DNA of 64,000 nt. Source: Paramoeba atlantica. Its lineage: Eukaryota; Protista; Discosea. The stretch spans positions 711,930 through 775,929 of the forward strand of contig CDRNVI010000039.1 of the NCBI GenBank assembly GCA_977017575.1. Direction: 5' to 3'. Position numbers and translations under genes: made by a program. The notes beneath the pieces were generated by a model, which had not been told where the DNA came from, ran no database searches, and worked only from the letters and a program-made list of their open reading frames with translations. This document shows positions 1-37,425 of this stretch, one piece after another. The first letter of the stretch is position 1. The number at the start of each line of letters is the position of its first letter.

Positions 1-127
1 ATACTTCTTGACAATTCCTCCCCTTTTGATGCCTCAAAGTAACGTAAATATAAACGTGATGATGATCGAGAGTCGTGTGCCACACGTAGCACCCCGCATT
101 CCACGAGGTCTAATAAATGTTGTAACA

Positions 128-388
128 ATGGGCCTCGTTACAGAGGATGAATATATAAATGCAACGGCAAGTGTGCCCCGAAGGACACGGAGCCCATGGG
201 CCTCCCAGCACGAATGCTGGGGCGGTGGTACCCCGAAGGGTACGGAGCCCATGGGGCTCGTTACAGAGGATGAATAAATGCAACGGCAAGTGTGTCCCGA
301 AGGAAACGGAGCCCATGAGCCTCCCAGCACGAATGCTGGGGCGGTGGTACCCAGAAGGGTACGGAGCCCATGGTCCTCGTTACAGAGA
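128..388 (-). repeat. ~120-bp tandem repeat (about 2.2 copies) with multiple hairpins
   Basis: Anchor ATGG..CTCGTTACAGAG at 128, 251 and 370. The minus strand shows UUCG-capped hairpins (GTACCC-TTCG-GGGTAC, CAGCA-TTCG-TGCTG). Confidence 0.85.
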
Positions 389-554
389 CTGGAGTATTGC
401 CAGGCCGGGGCCAAGCGAATTGATGCGTGACATTTGCAGGCGTGTAAGATTGTTTAGTTAAATGGAGCTAAATGTAGTAGTTCTACTGGATACTAGAAAC
501 AAGTAGTTCAGTTATATTCTTAAGTTCATAATCGTGCTATAGTTGTGTTGAAAT

Positions 555-623
555 CTTCACCCTCACACTCCGCCTAATATGGCGGTGCCGGGCTTGGGAC
601 CGGTAACAAACGTGTTTATGAAG
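555..623 (-). ncRNA. twister self-cleaving ribozyme (type P1)
   Basis: Minus strand: CUUCA UAA ACAC GU uuguua CCGG UCCCAAGC CCGG ca CCGCC-auauua-GGCGG a GUGU GAGGG UGAAG. P1, L1 (UAA/GAGGG), P2, P4, L4 and P5 fall in the canonical twister order. Confidence 0.85.
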
Positions 624-1111
624 AGTGATAATGTCGGATTCAGTGCTCTGAGAGCAAAAATACGCGAAAAACACCCCATTTTTACCCGAAAATCTGCTAC
701 TTTTGGCGCAAATCCTTCAGTTTTCTTCAGCTTTCCAGGTCAAATTTTCTTTTTTAGGCTCTTCGTTAAACGCGGAGGTAGTTTTCAACGCGAAGCACGC
801 AGCATGAGTGACTTCTTTTGAAATTGTGCAACACTTTCAAAAGTTGCAAAAAAAAATCACAAATTTTTGCGAACGCAGTAATAGGTCATGTTTGGCAGCA
901 ATTAAGAAGAGATCAACGAAGTCAGATGGGATCAACATTCTATTTCTATTTCTATTTGTCAGGCCGTTTGTCCAACTAGGGATATGGCCTCACCAGAGAA
1001 GGCTGGTACGCCCCTTCCAAGATTACTTTGGTGTCTGTTGTGCTCAGTCCGATCGAGAAAAGTCATCGAGTCAGCGACTGATTGGCGTGCACTAAGAACA
1101 CCGATGAACCG

Positions 1112-4775: not shown

Positions 4776-4974
4776 AATCCTTTCCAGAAAACAAGAGGGG
4801 GGCGCAGAAAGTGGTTTTGGTCCAGCAGGGTTAAAGGAGGCCACAGACGTGAGCGGGAAGTATGGCGTCACGCACGTGACGCTCACTTCTTGTCTCTCCA
4901 CCGGAGCTCGATCCTTCGCCTTGACGTGGCGCTCCGGCTTACCACCCTTTTGGGTGAACCAAGAAGGGATCAGT

Positions 4975-5893: not shown

Positions 5894-6012
5894 AGAGTAC
5901 AACACTCAGGGTTCCCGAGCGATCGCTCACCTCAGTACTAACTGAGCCTGACGGTGCTTAACTTCACAAAGCGAACGGGATGTGGTGTTTTCACCGTAGT
6001 ATGGTCGTACCC
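5894..6012 (-). rRNA. 5S: 5S rRNA copy 1 (probably retroposed)
   Basis: GGGTACGACCATACT...GTGAAGTTAAGC...GTTAGTAC...GTGTTGTACTCT, 119 nt, matching the recalled trypanosomatid 5S layout. Confidence 0.92.
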
Positions 6013-6024
6013 TTTTTTTTAAAA

Positions 6025-6143
6025 AGAGTACAACACTCAGGGTTCCCGAGCGATCGCTCACCTCGGTACTAACTGAGCCTGACGGTGCTTAACTTCACAA
6101 AGCGAACGGGATGTGGTGTTTTCACCGTAGTATGGTCGTACCC
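6025..6143 (-). rRNA. 5S: 5S rRNA copy 2 (probably retroposed)
   Basis: One substitution versus copy 1; joined to it by only TTTT-AAAAAAAA. Confidence 0.92.
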
Positions 6144-7588
6144 CCGTGCTATACCCCCGAGTGGCCTTGGCTTCTCAGCTTCAAAGGGCTAAACCTCGGC
6201 TTCAAAGGGCTCCTATCTCTCCGAATTCTGACCCTAACCCCGTTTTAATGGGTTATTTGCAAGCCGCAGATGAGCGGTACCCAACCCGAAAAGCGGTATG
6301 AAGTTCCCCTTAGGGGCTCATCTTCAGGTGCATTTCAGGCCTATCCATTACAGGGTCTAGCGTTCACACAGTTTTAGTTCCTTGGGAATGATTTTTTAGT
6401 ACCTCTGTTTAACGTTTGGGTTTTCGTGCTCTTTCTATATTCATCTATTGTCTTTATCCAACTTTTTTTATTCTGGGCTTTCAGTTTCGATGAGCAATCT
6501 GTTGTTATCCCAACTCTTTCCAGTGCAGCTACAAGGCTTCTACTATAGCATGGCAGGCTTCGTTTATATGTATTTCCTCTATTTTGAGTTGATCGATATT
6601 TGCCGAATAGCACTCTGTTCGGGAATCTATCTGGACCCATTCTTGCGACGTGTCCAGCAAACAGTAAACTTCGGGCATCTATTTGTGGCTGGAGTGGGTC
6701 CATTCCTGCGATCGATAGGCATTCCTTCTGGGAGGTATATCTTATTGCATCCTTCGCAGATTCTTGGTGTTGTTTATCATTGGAGTCGCTATTGTCGTTC
6801 TTGACCCATGGTATGCCGAAAGATGTTTTGATGTATCTTATATAGGCGCGGTTGAGTTTCAGATGCTGGGTTTGTGTAAGCGCCCACGTTGAGCTCGCAT
6901 ATAGTAGAATTGGTACTATACAGACTTCTAGGATGTCTTTTCGTTTTCCTTGTGATAGCCTTATCTTTCCACAAGTCTCTAAATTTTCTCATACCTGCGC
7001 AAGCTCTTCCTATTCTGTTTTCTATTTCTTCTTCCAATGAAGCATCTTCACTGATGACTGTTCCAAGGTATGAGAAGTTCCGTACTTGTTCAATAGTTTC
7101 TTCTTGTGCTTTTATCTCGGATGTGTAATACTTTTCAGCTTTGCAAGGTTGAATTACCTGTGTTTTAGTTTTCCTTGTGTTTATCCTTACTCCCCATCGG
7201 TTCATAACCCCTACTACTGACGAAGACTGTACCGTTATCATTCCACCCATGCGACTGCATAAGATGGGATTCCGACAACATTGTATAGATGCTGAAATGA
7301 ATTTTGATAGACCAGACAGAAGCATTTCTTGTTTTTCGAAGTGATTACCGAAACATGAGAAATCCTTTAGATGGTAATTGCGGCACTTTGATCTCGCCCC
7401 GGTGGAGAGACAAGAAATGCTTCTAGGCTCAGCTCTGAAGACTAGAAGCTAACTTCTTGGCTTGACATTGAGGGAGAGTCCTTCATCATCTACTAATGCA
7501 ATGTAGAAATACGAGTGTGATGAAATGTGCCAATATGAATATGATCCACCGCAATATGAGAAAACGTGTAGCCTACATAATTTTATAG

Positions 7589-9040: not shown

Positions 9041-10435
9041 TTGAACGTAGGGCCAAATGATACGATTACTCTAGGAAATTACGGCATTGTACCAAGGGTT
9101 GACTCATATCGATATCTAGGCCACATGAAACACTCGCATAAGAATCGAGCCACTTTACAAGACCGTATACAATTAGCTTGGAGAGCATTTCATCGCTTAA
9201 AGCCGCTCTGGAGGGAACATTTAAGTGTAACGCTCCGCCTGAGAATATTTAATGCTCTTGTAACATCAGTTTTGTCGTACGGTTTAGCCTCTTTGGTTCC
9301 GACAGGTGTAGAATTAAAGATACTTGACACAGAAGTCAATAAGATGCGCAGAATAGCGACAGGGACGCCGTTGTGGGATGGTTATAAGCAAATACCAACA
9401 TGTGCGCTGTATAGGGGAGAACCGAAAGTTTCAACGCTCCTGAGAGTCAACCGCGCTAAACTAGTTGGACACCTTTTGCGGCATGATTCCCCTTTTGCGA
9501 ATGTTGCATTATGGAACATAAGGGAAGAGGCACGCATACGCTCATTGTCTGAAGCTTGTGCCCAGGATCTAGCAATAGATCCAATAGAAATGCACGAACG
9601 GGCACTTGATCGATGTTCTTGGCGTAATCTTATTCAGAATTTGTACCAACGACTAGAACCTATCGCCTATTATAATCCTTTTGATTCAACTAAAAGAATA
9701 GCAGAAGTTGCAAAGATTTTGCAATCGAATCAAAACTCTCTGGAAAAATGGCACGCATTGCAGTTTCAAGAGGAGAGTGAGACACTTTGGCCCCATAACA
9801 ACTTGCTTCATATATATTGTGATGGTTCAGTGAGAAAGCTTTCGAACAATATATTCGCAGGGGCATGTGCTGTAGCCTTCGAAGGAAACGAGATTCTAGC
9901 GACTAACGACAAAACGTTGGACTCTATTAACGCAACACCAATACGGGCAGAGCTTTCAGCTTTCTTATTGGCATTATCAACTGGTCAAGAGAAGAACGTA
10001 TCTTTCATAGTACACGTAGACTCCGAGCATACATGGAATTTCTGGCACAATTACCGTCGCGCATATCAATTGGGTCATTATGATGGACTTGAGAATGCCG
10101 ATTTGTTGATTCAAATAAACAGTCTAGCACAGGAAATAAACAAGAAACATGAAATTCTAGTTGTCAAAGTCAGAGCACATTGTGGTAATTCAAGGAATGA
10201 ACATGTGGACCAAATTGCAAAGGAAAGTGCAACATCTGAGTCTATAAGCGTCGCGGAGCCCTATATGAATATATGGAGTATCATTCTGGCACAGCAGCAC
10301 AAAACATCGATGGCTCCGTCAATTTCGTCTGAACGGCAGCATCCAACAAACATATCGCCTGTGAATATTGCGTGTAAACATCCGTGTAAAGATAAAAGAA
10401 CGTGTGGTCATAAGTGTTGCAAACGACATTTGTGA
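9041..10435 (+). CDS. 5'-truncated LINE ORF: RT thumb, RNase H and C-terminal Cys/His motif; element ends in (ATT)n at ~10522
   Basis: YRYLG; RNase H residues YCDGS, RAEL, VDSE, HCG...NEHVD; CKHPCKDKRTCGHKCCK. Confidence 0.85.
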   Translation: MNVGPNDTITLGNYGIVPRVDSYRYLGHMKHSHKNRATLQDRIQLAWRAFHRLKPLWREHLSVTLRLRIFNALVTSVLSYGLASLVPTGVELKILDTEVNKMRRIATGTPLWDGYKQIPTCALYRGEPKVSTLLRVNRAKLVGHLLRHDSPFANVALWNIREEARIRSLSEACAQDLAIDPIEMHERALDRCSWRNLIQNLYQRLEPIAYYNPFDSTKRIAEVAKILQSNQNSLEKWHALQFQEESETLWPHNNLLHIYCDGSVRKLSNNIFAGACAVAFEGNEILATNDKTLDSINATPIRAELSAFLLALSTGQEKNVSFIVHVDSEHTWNFWHNYRRAYQLGHYDGLENADLLIQINSLAQEINKKHEILVVKVRAHCGNSRNEHVDQIAKESATSESISVAEPYMNIWSIILAQQHKTSMAPSISSERQHPTNISPVNIACKHPCKDKRTCGHKCCKRHL

Positions 10436-10524
10436 ATAGCATTGAAAGGTTATTAATTTAGTGACATAATCAAGGACTCTTAGCCACTTATAACACAGTG
10501 GTGTATTATTATTATTATTATTTA

Positions 10525-10661
10525 ATCGCCAGCCTTCGAAATGTTCTAACTGTAATCGGTTAGGACATGTCGCACGCGAGTGTCGTGCGCTGACGTATTG
10601 CTTCAAGTGCAGAGGCAACGTTGGACACAAGGGGGGTGACGCGAAATGCCCCAAGAATTGA
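10525..10661 (+). pseudogene. gag C-terminus with two zinc knuckles (YR element family 3)
   Basis: Hand translation CSNCNRLGHVAREC...CFKCRGNVGHKGGDAKC*. Confidence 0.75.
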
Positions 10662-10816
10662 CTAGACTAAGGAGAACGACGGTGGAAGATGTAAGGGAGA
10701 AGCAGAAGCAGAAGTCGAGAAGACCAGTATAAAGTCACACGAAATTAATTTTCTGTACCTTTCTGTCCCTCTACATCACATTACTTTAAAACTGATTTAA
10801 CTAACATAAAAGTTGA

Positions 10817-11758
10817 ATGCTTAAAAAAGTCTCCTTGAAAAGGGTCCGGGACGAGCTTCAACAAGCAAACAAAAACTCTTACAGAATAGAGCAACTTACA
10901 GACGCGGCTGTGAAAGCTTCCACGGCTCGGGAACGAACTAGGGACTGGCGCATCCTGATGCATCTGCTTAGCATAGAACACGTATCTGAAATCACAATGT
11001 CTAGGTTTATTGATGTACTGGCAATTATTGCTGAGCACTATAGTCCCTCTAGACTTGAAAAGATGAGATCGGCCCTTGTTCACCGACAAACTCTGGATTT
11101 GCCGGAGTCCGAAAGGTGGACTCAGGATAGTAAATTCAGAATTGCGTTCCGAGGGCTCATCAGTGAATGCGAGCGACGCGTGAAATGCATCACAAAGAGC
11201 AAGTATAATACCAACTCAGAAGAAGCAGGAACACAAGGCCCGATTTTTGGTCAGAAATTGCAGGAGTTACTTCTCACATGCGTGGAACAAAGAAGGGGAA
11301 TCTAGGCGGGAGCAGTGAAACTGGGTTTCGAAGGCCTTCTCAGGAGTTCAGAGATCAGGACGCTTCGAAAGGAACATCTGATAAGAACGGAGAACGGACG
11401 GTGGTACGTTCGAGCCGTTGGAGGGAAAGGGAGAAGGGAAGATGAGATAAAAGTGTATTTGCGAGATACAGACGCCAAGATCGAGAGAATGTGGATGATC
11501 TTAAAGAAGGGATGTCCAGATGAGTTAATCTTTCCAAACTGGAGCGCCAGGGAAGCGAACAACATAATAAATGACGCTGCCATCGAATACAAATGGGATC
11601 CAAAAAGAATTTGGTCCATGCATTCACTGAGGCATGGTAAGGCGACTGACCTAAAGTTGAGGGGTGTTGAACCCGGAGAAAGGAAATCCTTGGGACGATG
11701 GCGAAGCGCAACTGCCGAACAACATTACAGCCGACACCCCAATCAACATAACCAATAA
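10817..11758 (+). pseudogene. tyrosine recombinase with one in-frame TAG at 11303-11305
   Basis: Two ORFs in the same frame; catalytic pattern LLRSSE, HSLRHG, GRW, HY. Confidence 0.85.
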
Positions 11759-16667: not shown

Positions 16668-16700
16668 CAACAAGGTACAGAAACTGTATCTTTATCGTTA
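16668..16700 (-). other. spliced-leader relic joined at a splice acceptor of the gag 5' UTR
   Basis: TAACGATAAAGATACAGTTTCTGTACCTTGTTG fused to CGACACTCC, which in unmodified copies follows ...TTTTTGTGTATAG. Confidence 0.8.
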
Positions 16701-17287: not shown

Positions 17288-17500
17288 CAGTTTCTGTACC
17301 TTGTTGCCCCATAACAACTTGCTTCATATATATTGTGATGGTTCAGTGAGAAAGCTTTCGAACAGTATATTCGCAGGGGCATGTGCCTTCGAAGGAAACG
17401 AGATTCTAGCGACTAACGACAAAACGTTGGACTCTATTAACGCAACACCAATACGAGCAGAGCTTTCAGCTTTCTTATTGGCATTATCAACTGGTCAAGA
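17288..17500 (+). pseudogene. SL relic (17288-17306) fused to a LINE RNase H fragment
   Basis: CAGTTTCTGTACCTTGTTG followed by a near-copy of ~9791-9990. Confidence 0.75.
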
Positions 17501-30323: not shown

Positions 30324-33300
30324 TTTTTTTTTTTTGCTAGAACTACATTGTAAATGGAAATATTTGTGGTGCATTTGTAGGAATTTGGAGTATGCCAGAC
30401 GCATACGTTTAAACTTTAATATAATAAAATAGCGTCAATTGACGCATGACGTCAGAAACGGAGGGCTGACCGTCCGGCATAGGATGGCGGAATAGTCGTA
30501 GTTTCTTAAATTCAACTTATAGAATGTTGTGTGTTCAAGAAACTCCAACATGAAATTTTCTTAATTTGCGTCTATAGAAAACCATTTTATACATAAAATA
30601 TCTTTTTTTTTTTTTTATTGTGCAATTCTTTTCGTAAACTTTTATAGTTTTTTTTTCATTCTTATATTATATGTTCTTAGATTCTCAGCGTTAGATTCTC
30701 AGCGAATTGAAATCAGTGCACTGGCGAAGGCGCATTGTTCCGTGCTTTAGAAGGCATATTCCCGACTTTTGTCCTCCTTGCGAAGGTATCGACTCAGCTG
30801 TGAATATGCTACCGCCCCATTAAGCTCCTGCAACAATAGCTGAAATTCGGCATAAACGCGTTTGCGCTGCATTCCACAGGCATCTGCGAGAGCATCCATA
30901 AGAGCCTTCGTGTTTGAATGCATTGCACCCCCTGAGAGGACAGGTATACATTGAAAGCTTTCAGCCATGATCTTCCCGGTCTTGACGTATGTGTCATGTT
31001 TTCGTCGACAGGCGTCGCGGAATAAATGTGCACACTTTGTGTCAAGGTTTGAGGGTGCCAATTCGTGGATGACTGTTAGATCGTAGTATATCTCGCCGGT
31101 TGCCCAATATATAACAATGTCAGGACCGGACCGATGAAACGACCGCCCACCACACGTTTTCTCGTGAAGTTTTCGGTGATTGGGGTTAACGATCTCGTTA
31201 CATTGTGTGCAGCGGAAAGTTGACAGTGCACGGGGCTCCTTTTCGCACGGAATGCCTGTTTTCATACAGAGTTCGTAAATGAAGTTGACCAGAGTGTTGT
31301 GTTTAGTCGTGGCATTGAGACCACCGCATTTTGTACAGCCCATGATGTGTGTCAAGATTGAATCGGAGTCAAGAAGAATTCTGCAGCCGGGGCATGTGAT
31401 GTGTGATGGCAGATCTGGGTGAGCGATCCCCAATCGTGGCATGACGGCGAGACTGAACAGGTGTGATGGTATGAGTCGCGCGTCAGAGTGCGTCCATCCG
31501 TTATTGCCTTTGTGTGTTACTTTTTCGAGTACCTTCGCTATGTTTGATTGCTCGCAGTAGAATTTCATCGCAACGAAATTTATCTCAGCAAAACTAGAAA
31601 AAGTTAGCATAAATAATGATCGCAGGCACCGCAGACCTGAATATCAAGAACACCATATGCAGTGTTGTATTTTGATTTTTGAGGTGACATGCATCACGCA
31701 AGAGACGTGCACTCCTCAGCAGGAAGAAGGAAACTTCCTGTCTCTTCAGTTTGCCGGAGCGTAAATGGGTTATCCGTGCTCATCAACAAACCTCCGAGAC
31801 AAGAAGTCTCACTTTCCTCTGTTTCAGAGTACACAATCTCATCACTTACCCATTGAAAGCATTCCGCAACACTCTCCATCTTTCCAGTTTGCCGGAGCGT
31901 AAGTGGGTTTTCCGTGCTCATCAACAAACCTTCAAAATGAAGAGTGTCTCGTCCTGCTTTCAACGAGCACATGATCTTTTTGCATGCGCATGCCACACTC
32001 AGTGCCTTTTTCACCTTTCCAGTGTCGTTTGCTTCGGAGCGCGGGCGAAAGCGAGGGTCCTCCGACGATGTGACATTTGAAAGGATCATAAAAGGAATAA
32101 AAATCAACAAGGTACAGAAACAAGGTAATCAACAAGGTACAGAAATTGCTCGCGGGTCATCTTTTTCCAAATTTTGATGTGCTTTTGAGCCGCCGTCGTG
32201 GTTTCGTCTACCGGAGGTATGTTGCTCTGAAGGTGGTCCGTTGATCCAACATTTCGCTCCCTGATTCCATCTGTCCGAGCTGAATTGTTTTTGGGGCGCT
32301 CAAGAACAGAGTGGCATGAGGAGCGGTACGCGGCCTCTCGCGTGGAAGAGCAGTCTGTCAAGCCGAGTCCTCCTTTTCTTGTGGGCATTCGCAGCAACGC
32401 GATTTGTTCATCCGAGAGATGTCCGAACCATGATGTAAGAACGTTTTCTACCTCTTTGTCGAATCGGGTCGCTAGTTCAGCTGAAGCGGTGGGGTTGTGT
32501 GCACGGAGGTGGTAGGCCTGTCTAACGTTTATACATCTGGAAAGCAGATTGCACGATACATTGTTAACCCCCATCAATTTGAGCCGTCGGAAGCTGTCGT
32601 TGTGCTTCGTCAGTGACTGTATTAGGCGTTCGCTGACCGATTTGTCGTCCCCGATGAAAGCCCCAAGGATTTTTGTTGCTTTTTTTTTGGTGATTACCCC
32701 GGCGCTCTCTAATTCTTGTGGTAATGGTTCTTCTTCCAGTCCGCCAAACCAGACACATTTTTTGGGAGCAACTATTAGATTTTGTTCCTCTAGAAGCGTT
32801 TTTAGTCGGGAGAAGGCACTGGCCAATCGCTCGGGGTTTTTTGACGCAATAGTTACATCATCGACATAAGCGTTGATTGTGATATCAGGGTGCTCTGCAG
32901 ACAGAGTTTCAAGGATTGGTTGCAATAGGGCACAGAAATAAACCGATGAAAGTGTGGACCCTTGTCGGACACCATTTGTGCTTGGAATTGTTCCTGCATG
33001 GTGACCTTGATTTCCGCAGTATAGCAACTCAGATGCCGTTGCGTATTCAGCATGGAAAAACCTCTGGAAGGGTTTCAATGTAGCAAGACCATATACGGCT
33101 TTCGCCAGGGCTGGTCGCGATGGGGAGTTGAAGGCGTTTTTTACATCTACGGATAGGATGCACGAGCCGTCGCGATATAGGGAGTTTAGCCGATGTACAA
33201 TCTTCTCGCAGCCTGACTTAGATAGAACTCCTTGTTGGAGCGGCGCAAATAGCGGTTGCAGGGTGGGTTCAAATCGCTGAACAAGGACCAAGCCAGAAAG

Positions 33301-34725
33301 TTTCATTAGGACTTCACCAATTGCGATCGGGCGGATGCCTCCATCAGGCTTGGGAATACCAATTAACCTTGCTCGTGTTAATCGGCGCATCAGTTCTTTA
33401 GTGAGAAATCCATTGATCAGGTCCTGAATCATGTGGAAAAGACTCCCGCAGCATACAGGGTCATCGATGAGTATGCGTACTATCGTGTCCGTCGTACCAG
33501 TTGGTCCGGGGCTAGCTCCTTTGGCGAGGCGCAACCCAGCAGAGCGGAGTTCAGTAGGGGTGAGTCCGCCTATTAGGGGGGCGTCACATGGAAGATCAAG
33601 TTCGTATGGGTTTTGTGGGTGTAAGTCTTGAAGTTTCTTGAATGTCTCTTCTTCGGATAAGTATTGCTTCTCAATTTTGCGGTCAAGCACTTGAGCTCCT
33701 TTCCTGGCATATCCTTCTATCACGAGCCGTGTTGCTCTTTTAATGGCTCGTTTATCAGAAGCCGTGAGGTCTCCCTTGTTCTCCGAAAGTTCGTCTCCAT
33801 TGTCTTCTTTTCCATTCGAACGATCCAAAAGTGCTTTCCCATCTTTCATATTCTGTTGGGCTGAGTCTCGCGCTGTTTCCTCCGGCGGAAATGGTCGCCG
33901 ACGTCTGTTGCGATTGGATTGTTGTCGAAGTGTAGCTAAGGATGTTTTCATGGCCGAGAGGACCGCGTGCCAGATTTTGTGTCTTTGTGGGTAAGGGCTG
34001 TTCGCGTAGTCACTCATTATTTCTCGGTATGTGGCGATGACGCCTGGTATTAACTCAGGCCTCATAACTCGTGATGTTGGGATAGGTGCGCGGTCCAGAT
34101 CGTCGTCAGTCCAATCAGGGACGGGAAGGGCTGCATTGGGAATGTGCGGGATCGACTGGTTCAGCTTCGGTGGACAGGTTTCTGGGGACGGTGGAGTACA
34201 GTGCCATATAATTTTGTACACTCTAACCGTTTCTTGTGGTGGCAGCGTTCCGAAAAATTCTTCATCGATCTTGTGGCCTGCAATACCTTTGTATTGCAAG
34301 TTCAATTTGGCGGCACCTTTTCTCCTATTCACGCTGGTAACTTTGCCAATAGATATATTGATCTGGTCTCGGTTATCGAATGTCCATGCGATGGTGCACA
34401 TCGCTCCCTTTTTGACATGTTTCGAGGCATTCCACAAATGATCGGCGGGAATCGGATAGTGAGACTGCGGTGACATAGACCCAAGCTCAGTGCATAGCCG
34501 TCCAGAATCGACTTCTTCGTCGAAGCAAATTCTTTCTAAGTCGTCGTGTCTGGCATGCGGATCGATCGAGTTGACCTTGTCGGGCTCGTGTCCTCCTTCT
34601 GTCGTACCTTCCTGATTTTCGGTGGGTTGAATTATCTCCCCTATGCTATAATCACCATCCTCTCTTTCAACCACTCCGGCAGTGTAAAGTTCACCGATCG
34701 GTAGTGGGATCGACGGGTTGTTTTC
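30324..34725 (-). mobile_element. CRE-like RLE non-LTR element with poly(A) tail, interrupted at 31556-32144
   Basis: RT (SPGPTG, PKPDGGIRPI, DVKNAFN, GVRQG, YVDD), CPGC zinc finger, PDIVI...DLTV RLE motif. Confidence 0.88.
31556..32144 (-). pseudogene. retroposed SL-capped mRNA fragment with a 131-codon hypothetical ORF (31694-32089)
   Basis: Begins with SL 3' ends TTCTGTACCTTGTTG; TSD ATTGCTCGC at 31547-31555 and 32145-32153; removal restores the CRE frame (MTREQ|SNIAK). Confidence 0.8.
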
Positions 34726-36943
34726 GAGAACCTTTCTTTTTATGAGAACCTTTCTTTTTATGAGAACCTTTCTTTTTATGAGAACCTTTCTTTTTATGAG
34801 AACCTTTCTTTTTATGAGAACCTTTCTTTTTATGAGAACCTTTCTTTTTATGAGAACCTTTCTTTTTATGAGAACCTTTCTTTTTATGAGAACCTTTCTT
34901 TTTATGAGAACCTTTCTTTTTATGAGAACCTTTCTTTTTATGAGAACCTTTCTTTTTATGAGAACCTTTCTTTTTATGAGAACCTTTCTTTTTATGAGAA
35001 CCTTTCTTTTTATGAGAACCTTTCTTTTTATGAGAACCTTTCTTTTTATGAGAACCTTTCTTTTTATGAGAACCTTTCTTTTTATGAGAACCTTTCTTTT
35101 TATGAGAACCTTTCTTTTTATGAGAACCTTTCTTTTTATGAGAACCTTTCTTTTTATGAGAACCTTTCTTTTTATGAGAACCTTTCTTTTTATGAGAACC
35201 TTTCTTTTTATGAGAACCTTTCTTTTTATGAGAACCTTTCTTTTTATGAGAACCTTTCTTTTTATGAGAACCTTTCTTTTTATGAGAACCTTTCTTTTTA
35301 TGAGAACCTTTCTTTTTATGAGAACCTTTCTTTTTATGAGAACCTTTCTTTTTATGAGAACCTTTCTTTTTATGAGAACCTTTCTTTTTATGAGAACCTT
35401 TCTTTTTATGAGAACCTTTCTTTTTATGAGAACCTTTCTTTTTATGAGAACCTTTCTTTTTATGAGAACCTTTCTTTTTATGAGAACCTTTCTTTTTATG
35501 AGAACCTTTCTTTTTATGAGAACCTTTCTTTTTATGAGAACCTTTCTTTTTATGAGAACCTTTCTTTTTATGAGAACCTTTCTTTTTAAGAGAACCTGTC
35601 TTTTTATGAGAACCTTTCTTTTTATGAGAACCTTTCTTTTTATGAGAACCTTTCTTTTTATGAGAACCTTTCTTTTTATGAGAACCTTTCTTTTTATGAG
35701 AACCTTTCTTTTTATGAGAACCTTTCTTTTTATGAGAACCTTTCTTTTTATGAGAACCTTTCTTTTTATGAGAACCTTTCTTTTTATGAGAACCTTTCTT
35801 TTTATGAGAACCTTTCTTTTTATGAGAACCTTTCTTTTTATGAGAACCTTTCTTTTTATGAGAACCTTTCTTTTTATGAGAACCTTTCTTTTTATGAGAA
35901 CCTTTCTTTTTATGAGAACCTTTCTTTTTATGATAACCTTTCTTTTTATGAGAACCTTTCTTTTTATGAGAACCTTTCTTTTTATGAGAACCTTTCTTTT
36001 TATGAGAACCTTTCTTTTTATGAGAACCTTTCTTTTTATGAGAACCTTTCTTTTTATGAGAACCTTTCTTTTTATGAGAACCTTTCTTTTTATGAGAACC
36101 TTTCTTTTTATGAGAACCTTTCTTTTTATGAGAACCTTTCTTTTTATGAGAACCTTTCTTTTTATGAGAACCTTTCTTTTTATGAGAACCTTTCTTTTTA
36201 TGAGAACCTTTCTTTTTATGAGAACCTTTCTTTTTATGAGAACCTTTCTTTTTATGATAACCTTTCTTTTTATGAGAACCTTTCTTTTTATGAGAACCTT
36301 TCTTTTTATGAGAACCTTTCTTTTTATGAGAACCTTTCTTTTTATGAGAACCTTTCTTTTTATGAGAACCTTTCTTTTTATGAGAACCTTTCTTTTTATG
36401 AGAACCTTTCTTTTTATGAGAACCTTTCTTTTTATGAGAACCTTTCTTTTTATGAGAACCTTTCTTTTTATGAGAACCTTTCTTTTTATGAGAACCTTTC
36501 TTTTTATGAGAACCTTTCTTTTTATGAGAACCTTTCTTTTTATGAGAACCTTTCTTTTTATGAGAACCTTTCTTTTTATGAGAACCTTTCTTTTTATGAG
36601 AACCTTTCTTTTTATGAGAACCTTTCTTTTTATGAGAACCTTTCTTTTTATGAGAACCTTTCTTTTTATGAGAACCTTTCTTTTTATGAGAACCTTTCTT
36701 TTTATGAGAACCTTTCTTTTTATGAGAACCTTTCTTTTTATGAGAACCTTTCTTTTTATGAGAACCTTTCTTTTTAAGAGAACCTTTCTTTTTATGAGAA
36801 CCTTTCTTTTTATGAGAACCTTTCTTTTTATGAGAACCTTTCTTTTTATGAGAACCTTTCTTTTTATGAGAACCTTTCTTTTTATGAGAACCTTTCTTTT
36901 TATGAGAACCTTTCTTTTTATGAGAACCTTTCTTTTTATGAGA
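34726..36943. repeat. 18-bp satellite B (GAGAACCTTTCTTTTTAT), about 123 copies
   Basis: Direct reading. Confidence 0.97.
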
Positions 36944-37425
36944 TAGTGATAGTGATAGTGATTACAGGCGGTTACCCTAGTACAAGGATGTCGCCTCCCC
37001 TGAGAAAGCAGGGGAACTTGGGGGAAGGAGCCTGGTCGCTGGATCATCGAAACTCTTGCGAGTTTCGAATAGGGTATGCAAATCGGTGAGCGATTTGCTG
37101 CCTCCGCAGATCCTAGGACTTCCTTCCCCGGGCACGTGGAGAGCTAAGCCCTCGCTATTCGGCGAACTGGGTGTTAGCCCTGATTCATTCTGAATGCCCC
37201 ACGTCTCCCGAAGGAGAAACTAGTGCCATATTCGGGAGTATCAAGTCTCAGCTTCAACGGTTTTTGGCTCCTCAGCTTCAACGGACCAAGTCTTCTAGGG
37301 TGTTATACCTTTGAGCGGACTTGGCTCCTCAGCTTCAAAGGGCTAAACCTCGGCTTCAACGAGCTCGTGTCTCTCCGAATTATGACCCTAGCCCTGGAAA
37401 GCTAAAAATAGGGAGCGAACAAACA

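Follow-up and report, generated by a model that had tools for sequence, protein, structure and literature searches.

We propose that a twister ribozyme heads a family of tyrosine-recombinase retroelements with DIRS-like ends and a VIPER-like gene order (gag-recombinase-RT/RNase H), and that these elements would propagate through a cycle in which the ribozyme works together with an internal antisense copy (ICR); we place the probability of this reading at roughly 0.75. In such a cycle the element would be transcribed within longer host or read-through transcripts, and the twister would fold once made and cut between U618 and A617 (positions refer to the window, the whole 64,000-nt stretch of DNA analysed here). 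The released element RNA would begin with AAACAC... and be short of its first 16-17 nt. After reverse transcription, the ICR would act as both splint and template, restoring the leader and the 5' strand of P1 and making the circle junction, and the recombinase would insert the circle. Cleavage by a type-P1 twister takes place a few bases into the 5' strand of the motif, so the leader and half of P1 would be lost. As the cleavage point lies 16 nt in from the element's 5' end, the element would need an internal antisense copy of that leader. That the whole clade swapped a promoter-defined start for a twister cut, with the ICR re-templating the leader and half of P1 at each cycle, is in our judgement an even bet.

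The ribozyme of the window occupies 69 bases of the minus strand (623-555), where sequence confirmed a true twister self-cleaving ribozyme motif of type P1 and family A, complete in the order P1-L1-P2-L2-P4-L4-P5, with cleavage itself predicted. The P1 5' strand CUUCA (623-619) is followed by the UAA of L1 (618-616), the P2 5' strand ACAC (615-612), the dinucleotide GU (610-611), UUGUUA and the first strand of P4. Both strands of P4 read CCGG (603-600 with 591-588), and they close the loop L4 UCCCAAGC (592-599), which was located by an exact match of a 16-nt core, CCGGTCCCAAGCCCGG. Then come CA, the P5 hairpin (570-585; CCGCC/GGCGG with the loop AUAUUA), a single A, the P2 3' strand GUGU (568-565), the pentamer GAGGG (560-564) and the P1 3' strand UGAAG (559-555). 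Within the pentamer, G562-G560 pair with C596-C598 of L4 as pseudoknot T1, a pairing seen through compensatory changes, and the conserved guanine that sits at the base of P2 is G564. The GU at 610-611 is the T2 partner of G593 and C592; most copies in our alignment of 30 distinct copies (alignment A1) carry GC there.

The minimum free energy (MFE) fold yields P1, P2, P4 and P5 (-22.6 kcal/mol, z = -1.8). A first-pass annotation of this DNA had listed every twister part in order at 555-623, including a perfect 5-bp P5, and both the minus-strand sequence and the MFE fold bore it out; the L4 and L1 UAA/GAGGG nucleotides are exact. Its coordinates for the cut, 618/617, were also right: the predicted scissile U-A step within the UAA of L1 occupies the position of U6-A7 in the rice twister (PMC6154101). 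Like rice Osa-1-4 (PDB 4OJI) and the Rfam model RF03160, the motif has P1-UAA-P2, a GC for T2 in most copies, a P4 that closes the same L4 loop, and GAGGG; it also shares with the rice type-P1 twister a double pseudoknot, predicted here, and a predicted U-A cut step near the 5' end (PMC6154101). It differs from the rice type-P1 twister in that P5 is present and P3 absent, a minority layout (among annotated twisters, P5 occurs in ~1% and P3 in 78%; PMC6154101), in that C(G/A)-P5-A(A) stands where the rice twister has a UAAA joiner from P4 to P2', and, for the window copy, in a G-U pair in T2 and an Rfam score under the cut-off. T2 can form there as G-C plus U-G, as against G-C plus C-G in 26 of the 30 aligned copies. 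The annotation had called the ribozyme canonical; the twister identity held, but the adjective was too strong for a motif with P5, without P3 and with GU as its T2 partner.

The twister stands at a fixed position, 16-30 nt inside the 5' ends of the elements, and at many loci an inverted partial copy of the first ~45 nt lies 0.5-1.1 kb downstream. A complete 2.4-kb family-A copy (L056) carries the antisense segment at ~612-770. When reverse-complemented, this segment reads as the 3' end of the element (...AACTCCCT; also given as ...GCATAGCAACTCCCT) joined directly to its 5' start (CATTATCACTCCTTCGTAA...), and it therefore represents a circle junction. Head and internal copy are identical over the first 19 nt, a stretch ending 2 nt past the predicted cut, and ~80% identical thereafter. 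The internal copy of each subfamily carries that subfamily's own leader (A1, A2, D, the window family-D element and L067): ...CACTCCTTCGTAA in A1, ...CACAGGCTTCATAA and ...CACAGACTTCATAA in A2, and 34-38 nt of unrelated sequence in family D (L063, the window element and L067). An ICR is present in L056, L057, L058, L059, L063, L064, L065, L067 and the window family-D element, and triplets of head, ICR and 3' end in the right order and orientation were found at at least 15 loci, spanning 2.4-7.1 kb. A search within 10 kb found no internal spare copy for families B and C.

This anatomy recalls DIRS-1 of Dictyostelium, in which an internal segment is complementary to the 5' extremity and the adjoining 3' extremity, a circle junction; there the ICR is experimentally essential and is thought to restore the ends missing from the transcript (PMC7192593). 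The 2-4 bases (CA or CATT) common to both insertion junctions of our elements likewise resemble the DIRS-1 crossover sequence (PMC7192593). However, DIRS-1 has long inverted LTRs and a transcript start set by its promoter, whereas no long inverted terminal repeats were seen here, the only inverted repeats being those between the ICR and the two ends. The missing piece would instead be set by the predicted ribozyme cut, and the complement of the 5' end consists of ~19-38 nt of perfect identity. By gene order the elements can be likened to VIPER/TATE of kinetoplastids, which have a gag-like (CCHC) ORF, a recombinase and RT/RNase H in that order, live in a spliced-leader protist and have short non-coding derivatives such as SIRE (PMC6681497). 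VIPER differs in having split direct repeats (A1 ... B1 A2 B2) and no ICR, and the VIPER/TATE paper mentions no ribozyme (PMC6681497); no such split repeats stood out in a self-comparison of L056.

The link to a recombinase was examined genome-wide. The PF00589 profile matched 92 recombinase-like places. Among the 100 twister cores listed, 9 had a recombinase match 2.7-4.2 kb downstream on the same strand and 11 had one within 8.5 kb, where ~0.9 would be expected by chance; RT/RNase H-like ORFs come directly after such matches. The family-D element L063 runs from the twister through a zf-CCHC gag-like ORF and a PF00589 recombinase to a 588-aa ORF, and two loci of another assembly (L067 and L069) show twister, internal copy, gag, recombinase and RT in order; the recombinase gene is present in all three of these family-D elements. 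Read by eye, the 588-aa ORF contains RT motifs A and B and the D-E-D pattern of RNase H. It aligns collinearly, if weakly, with a Pfam-positive pol ORF of the window (20%, E 0.09); in Pfam it matches RVT_3 only (E 0.023), and it has no sequence match in PDB. Four copies of it, 99-100% identical and fully open, lie downstream of a family-D twister and a recombinase match (assembly G000, C3:116599-118362, C6:135518-137281, C51:253262-255025 and C56:187250-189013), and the subfamily is therefore young. The YxDD motif is usual in the RTs of retroelements. The RT-like ORF at L063:4700-6463 (minus strand) reads LLYDSFLVV at that position and Pfam RVT_1 is silent on it, so its polymerase domain may be very divergent or unusual.

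Family-A copies are a different matter. All those examined are 1.5-4.3 kb long and non-coding, and the window copy is without a recombinase. The putative tie of family A to recombinase elements rests on the shared architecture, on weak PF00589 matches 2.7-3.0 kb downstream of two A-type cores (C16 and C29) and on one 7.1-kb family-A copy (C4:136815-143959) known by its coordinates alone. The family-D RT protein, used as a query in its own genome, gave no match inside family-A elements, and a 221-aa family-A ORF (L056:1283-1945) has no Pfam domain. A large-scale protein search yielded six ENA proteins, all of them unnamed and devoid of Pfam domains. Near one family-A3 head, an ORF at L060:2280-3461 (minus strand) encodes a DDE_3 transposase of the Tc1/mariner type.

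The first-pass annotation had proposed that the ribozyme defines an RNA end for a retroposon. The sequence comparisons support a retroelement RNA end, but the element would be of the tyrosine-recombinase type and not non-LTR, and the cut would not mark its border, as it falls 16 nt inside (633 against 618/617).

Spliced-leader-like 19-mers (CAGTTTCTGTACCTTGTTG) occur in the window in inverted orientation beside RT ORFs, at 16668-16686 (minus strand) and 17288-17306 (plus strand). Their placement suggests spliced-leader-associated retroelements in a euglenozoan host; the 19-mer itself matched no paper in the literature searched. The window also holds long intron-free ORFs, and together these features would fit a euglenozoan or kinetoplastid-like host with long transcription units. 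A promoterless element residing in such units would need other means to define the 5' end of its RNA. One further frame of the window, 1647 aa on the minus strand at 32104-37047, combines four LbH-type stretches of the eIF2B-epsilon kind with RVT_1; it could be a fusion of a host gene with a retroelement or a plain read-through frame.

The ribozyme might instead serve expression, by leaving an uncapped 5'-OH RNA whose translation or stability would differ, or by uncoupling the element from upstream trans-splicing and polyadenylation signals, with the ICR unrelated to the cut. Cleavage by a twister variant in the schistosome element Perere-3 is sufficient for translation of a downstream reporter (PMC8501958), and the presence of SL-like sequences in the genome would mean that mRNA ends are normally made by trans-splicing. 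Yet the identity between ICR and head is perfect through the cut and drops after it, and the ICR tracks the leader of each subfamily in lock-step, which is the pattern expected if the leader is recopied from the internal segment in every cycle. We consider expression as the sole role unlikely, and the two roles are compatible.

The cycle proposed here, ribozyme cut plus ICR repair, resembles known ribozyme-headed elements in some respects and departs from them in others. Perere-3 likewise carries a twister-class ribozyme at its head that is co-transcribed and frees the 5' end (PMC8501958), as is predicted here. It is, however, a non-LTR (TPRT) element cut beside the target-site duplication, with the flank supplying the P1 5' strand; the present recombinase-type elements own both their P1 5' strand and a leader of 16-30 nt, and the internal antisense copy backs up the two. 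In L1Tc of Trypanosoma cruzi, an HDV-like ribozyme in the first 77 nt frees the RNA (cited in PMC6765202). The likeness is that, in a spliced-leader protist, a ribozyme cuts the RNA of a retroelement out of long polycistronic transcripts, as predicted here, and the difference is that L1Tc is a LINE element whose HDV-like ribozyme class cuts at its own 5' edge, so that nothing of the element is lost.

A further alternative is that the twister, in place of trimming a single 5' end, processes tandem or read-through arrays into RNAs that are circular or of unit length. Hammerheads act in this way in retrozymes and Penelope-like elements (PMC6765202, PMC7761336). If tandem copies were cut, the RNA would keep the leader at its 3' end. 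Each element, however, has one ribozyme, at its head only; the copies examined are dispersed and have unrelated flanks; and the inverted partial copy is incapable of cleavage, as the 3' half of the motif is missing from it. We regard this alternative as very unlikely.

Twister ribozymes and ribozyme-headed retroelements are each already known. To our knowledge, the biological roles of twisters are mostly unknown, and the one documented in eukaryotes is the 5' processing of a schistosome non-LTR element. Under the proposed cycle, the same ribozyme class heads a different, recombinase-using order of retrotransposons in a host with long transcription units. If true, this would be the first biological role for a twister in retroelements of the recombinase type, and the purpose of the DIRS-type ICR would be demonstrated by nature in a form that can be read from sequence. 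The end-repair function of that region has long been proposed; the internal copy covers exactly the piece that the ribozyme would remove, and the function therefore becomes readable and testable. In the full-text literature, a scope short of most subscription journals, we found no pairing of a twister with a recombinase retrotransposon and, in keeping with the first-pass annotation, no twister in kinetoplastid-like protists.

The motif is abundant and variable. By chance, the window should contain 0.03 copies of its 16-nt core. The 45.7-Mb assembly has 112 places that match this core with no more than one mismatch, including 34 exact matches, and the reversed control has none. With a 101-nt query around the motif, at least 40 family-A copies were found at 75-100% identity. 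Four families can be told apart by an L4 variant and a matching pentamer after P2: UCCC with GAGGG (A), UUCC with GAGGA (B), UCAC with GAGUG (C) and UCCA with GAUGG (D). Each change in L4 is thus mirrored by a complementary change in the pentamer, and this was seen in the unfiltered listing too. Because alignment A1 was filtered on the expected pentamer, the 100% pairing of T1 within it is in part a product of that filter. Before filtering, the matching pentamer was present in 32 of 36 distinct copies, the four exceptions being two single-copy mutations, one truncation and one copy that keeps the T1 triplet. These four families, with their compensatory pseudoknot changes, amount to a natural mutational series for the twister T1 helix.

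Across A1, 88% of the cells are paired, a figure that falls to 33-44% once the 3' partners are displaced by 1-3 columns. Both sides change in 17 of 24 pairs, and none of 500 shuffles reached the observed covariation score. Double changes affect 3/3 pairs of T1, 5/5 of P5, 6/6 of P1 and 3/4 of P2; T2 and P4 are nearly invariant, and covariation says nothing for or against either. On this comparative evidence, we conclude that the motif is a real twister lineage maintained by selection.

That the first ~45 nt reappear, inverted, within the element could also point to a signal acting at the DNA level, a recombinase site or terminal inverted repeat that merely looks like a twister. This is highly improbable: compensatory changes in P1, P2, P5 and T1 are an RNA signature, the 3' half of the motif (P5, P2', pentamer and P1') is conserved in the sense copy only, and the inverted copy lies within the element, directly against the inverted 3' end, as a circle junction does and a terminus does not. 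A TIR or DNA-transposon reading of the element as a whole was rejected since the inverted partial copy is internal and fused to the inverted 3' end.

The first-pass annotation had proposed a covariance-model search with twister-P1 as a check. Run against RF03160, the window copy gave no significant match: 17.9 bits (E 0.28 in 301 nt), obtained from a relaxed scan only, against a gathering threshold of 67.2 bits. At gathering thresholds, Rfam reported no twister in the window and two 5S rRNAs only. Sibling copies scored 24-37 bits and no scored copy reached the threshold. The RF03160 alignment places P2 wrongly into P5, the model expecting P3 and no P5, and the poor fit arises because a layout with P5 and without P3 is handled badly by the model. 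We built our own covariance model (R1) from A1. It scores the family-A twister of the window, a training member, at 88.2 bits and the family-D twister at 48.5 bits, and within the window it matches these two known sites only. Over 160 kb of other loci it matched element heads only, one ribozyme per element. On two contigs of another public assembly, R1 also detected twisters that had no part in its training and whose P5 sequences are new; they stand upstream of gag, recombinase and RT. Chance likeness to the twister consensus, which the Rfam score under threshold might favour, has a negligible likelihood given the rarity expected of the core in the window, its 112 genome matches against none in the control and the covariation across four families. 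A weaker twister-like match of 20.9 bits lies at L069 323-418 (minus strand), with P4 CCAG/CUGG as a would-be compensatory pair and a pentamer, GAGCG, that mismatches its own L4.

The family-A copy of the window is part of a deleted element, of which positions 1-633 (minus strand) fall inside the window, as judged by its match to L056. The repeat element begins at 633, 16-17 nt before the cut, since similarity among copies ends upstream of CATTATCAC, and the 16-nt leader CATTATCACTCTTCAT, from the 5' end of the element to the cut and including the P1 5' strand, occupies 618-633. Tandem repeats of ~119 nt lie downstream of the ribozyme (128-387, minus strand; found by TRF) and are a family feature shared with L055, L056 and L064. 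The element extends to ~C39:711086, ~845 nt past base 1 of the window, for a total of ~1.5 kb. Positions 138-629 and 646-1619 of the window family-A sequence (WIN_A) match 25-516 and 1447-2436 of L056. The deletion junction lies at 126-143 (minus strand), and the equivalent of L056 517-1446, including the antisense ICR, is gone; it is because of this internal deletion that a search of WIN_A for an inverted internal spare of the leader found none.

The T2 partner GU is common only to the window copy and a copy at C40:138833 within A1, where column 16 is C-G in 26 sequences and U-G in these 2. The C40 copy shares its flanks with the window copy and the surrounding kilobases are 97-99% identical in inverted order; the pair therefore arose by segmental duplication, not by two independent insertions. 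Later changes in L4 and P5 have accrued in the C40 twin. By its sequence, the window copy is a dead derivative: its ICR is deleted, its T2 is weakened to G-C plus G-U, and it was passively duplicated together with its flanks. Neither it nor its twin shows signs of present selection. The ribozyme of the window copy probably retains the capacity to cut, but the copy would be unable to rebuild its own end.

The window contains a second twister, of family D, on the plus strand at 2813-2911 (also given as 2794-2911), with L4 UCCAAAGC, the pentamer GAUGG, a 6-bp P1 and an extra hairpin in L2. Its antisense spare lies 2 kb downstream, at 4824-4859 (minus strand), and is 100% identical to the first 36 nt of the element, spanning the predicted cleavage site. 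The family-A and family-D twisters face apart across a 2.2-kb spacer with 67-nt tandem repeats (2212-2759), and the pair is duplicated together on C40. For the 3' end of this family-D element, only a 30-nt partial match was found, near 7390-7419. A tyrosine-recombinase ORF fragment (PF00589, E 3e-11) lies further downstream on the plus strand, at 11315-11758. In the region 9041-11758 (plus strand), an RNase H ORF (PF00075) comes first and a recombinase ORF (PF00589) second; such an arrangement is unlike the gag-recombinase-RT of family D and may represent another type of recombinase retroelement. Two tandem 5S rRNA genes, scoring 99 bits each, stand at 5894-6143 (minus strand), to the right of the family-D twister and its spare copy and to the left of the RNase H and recombinase ORFs.
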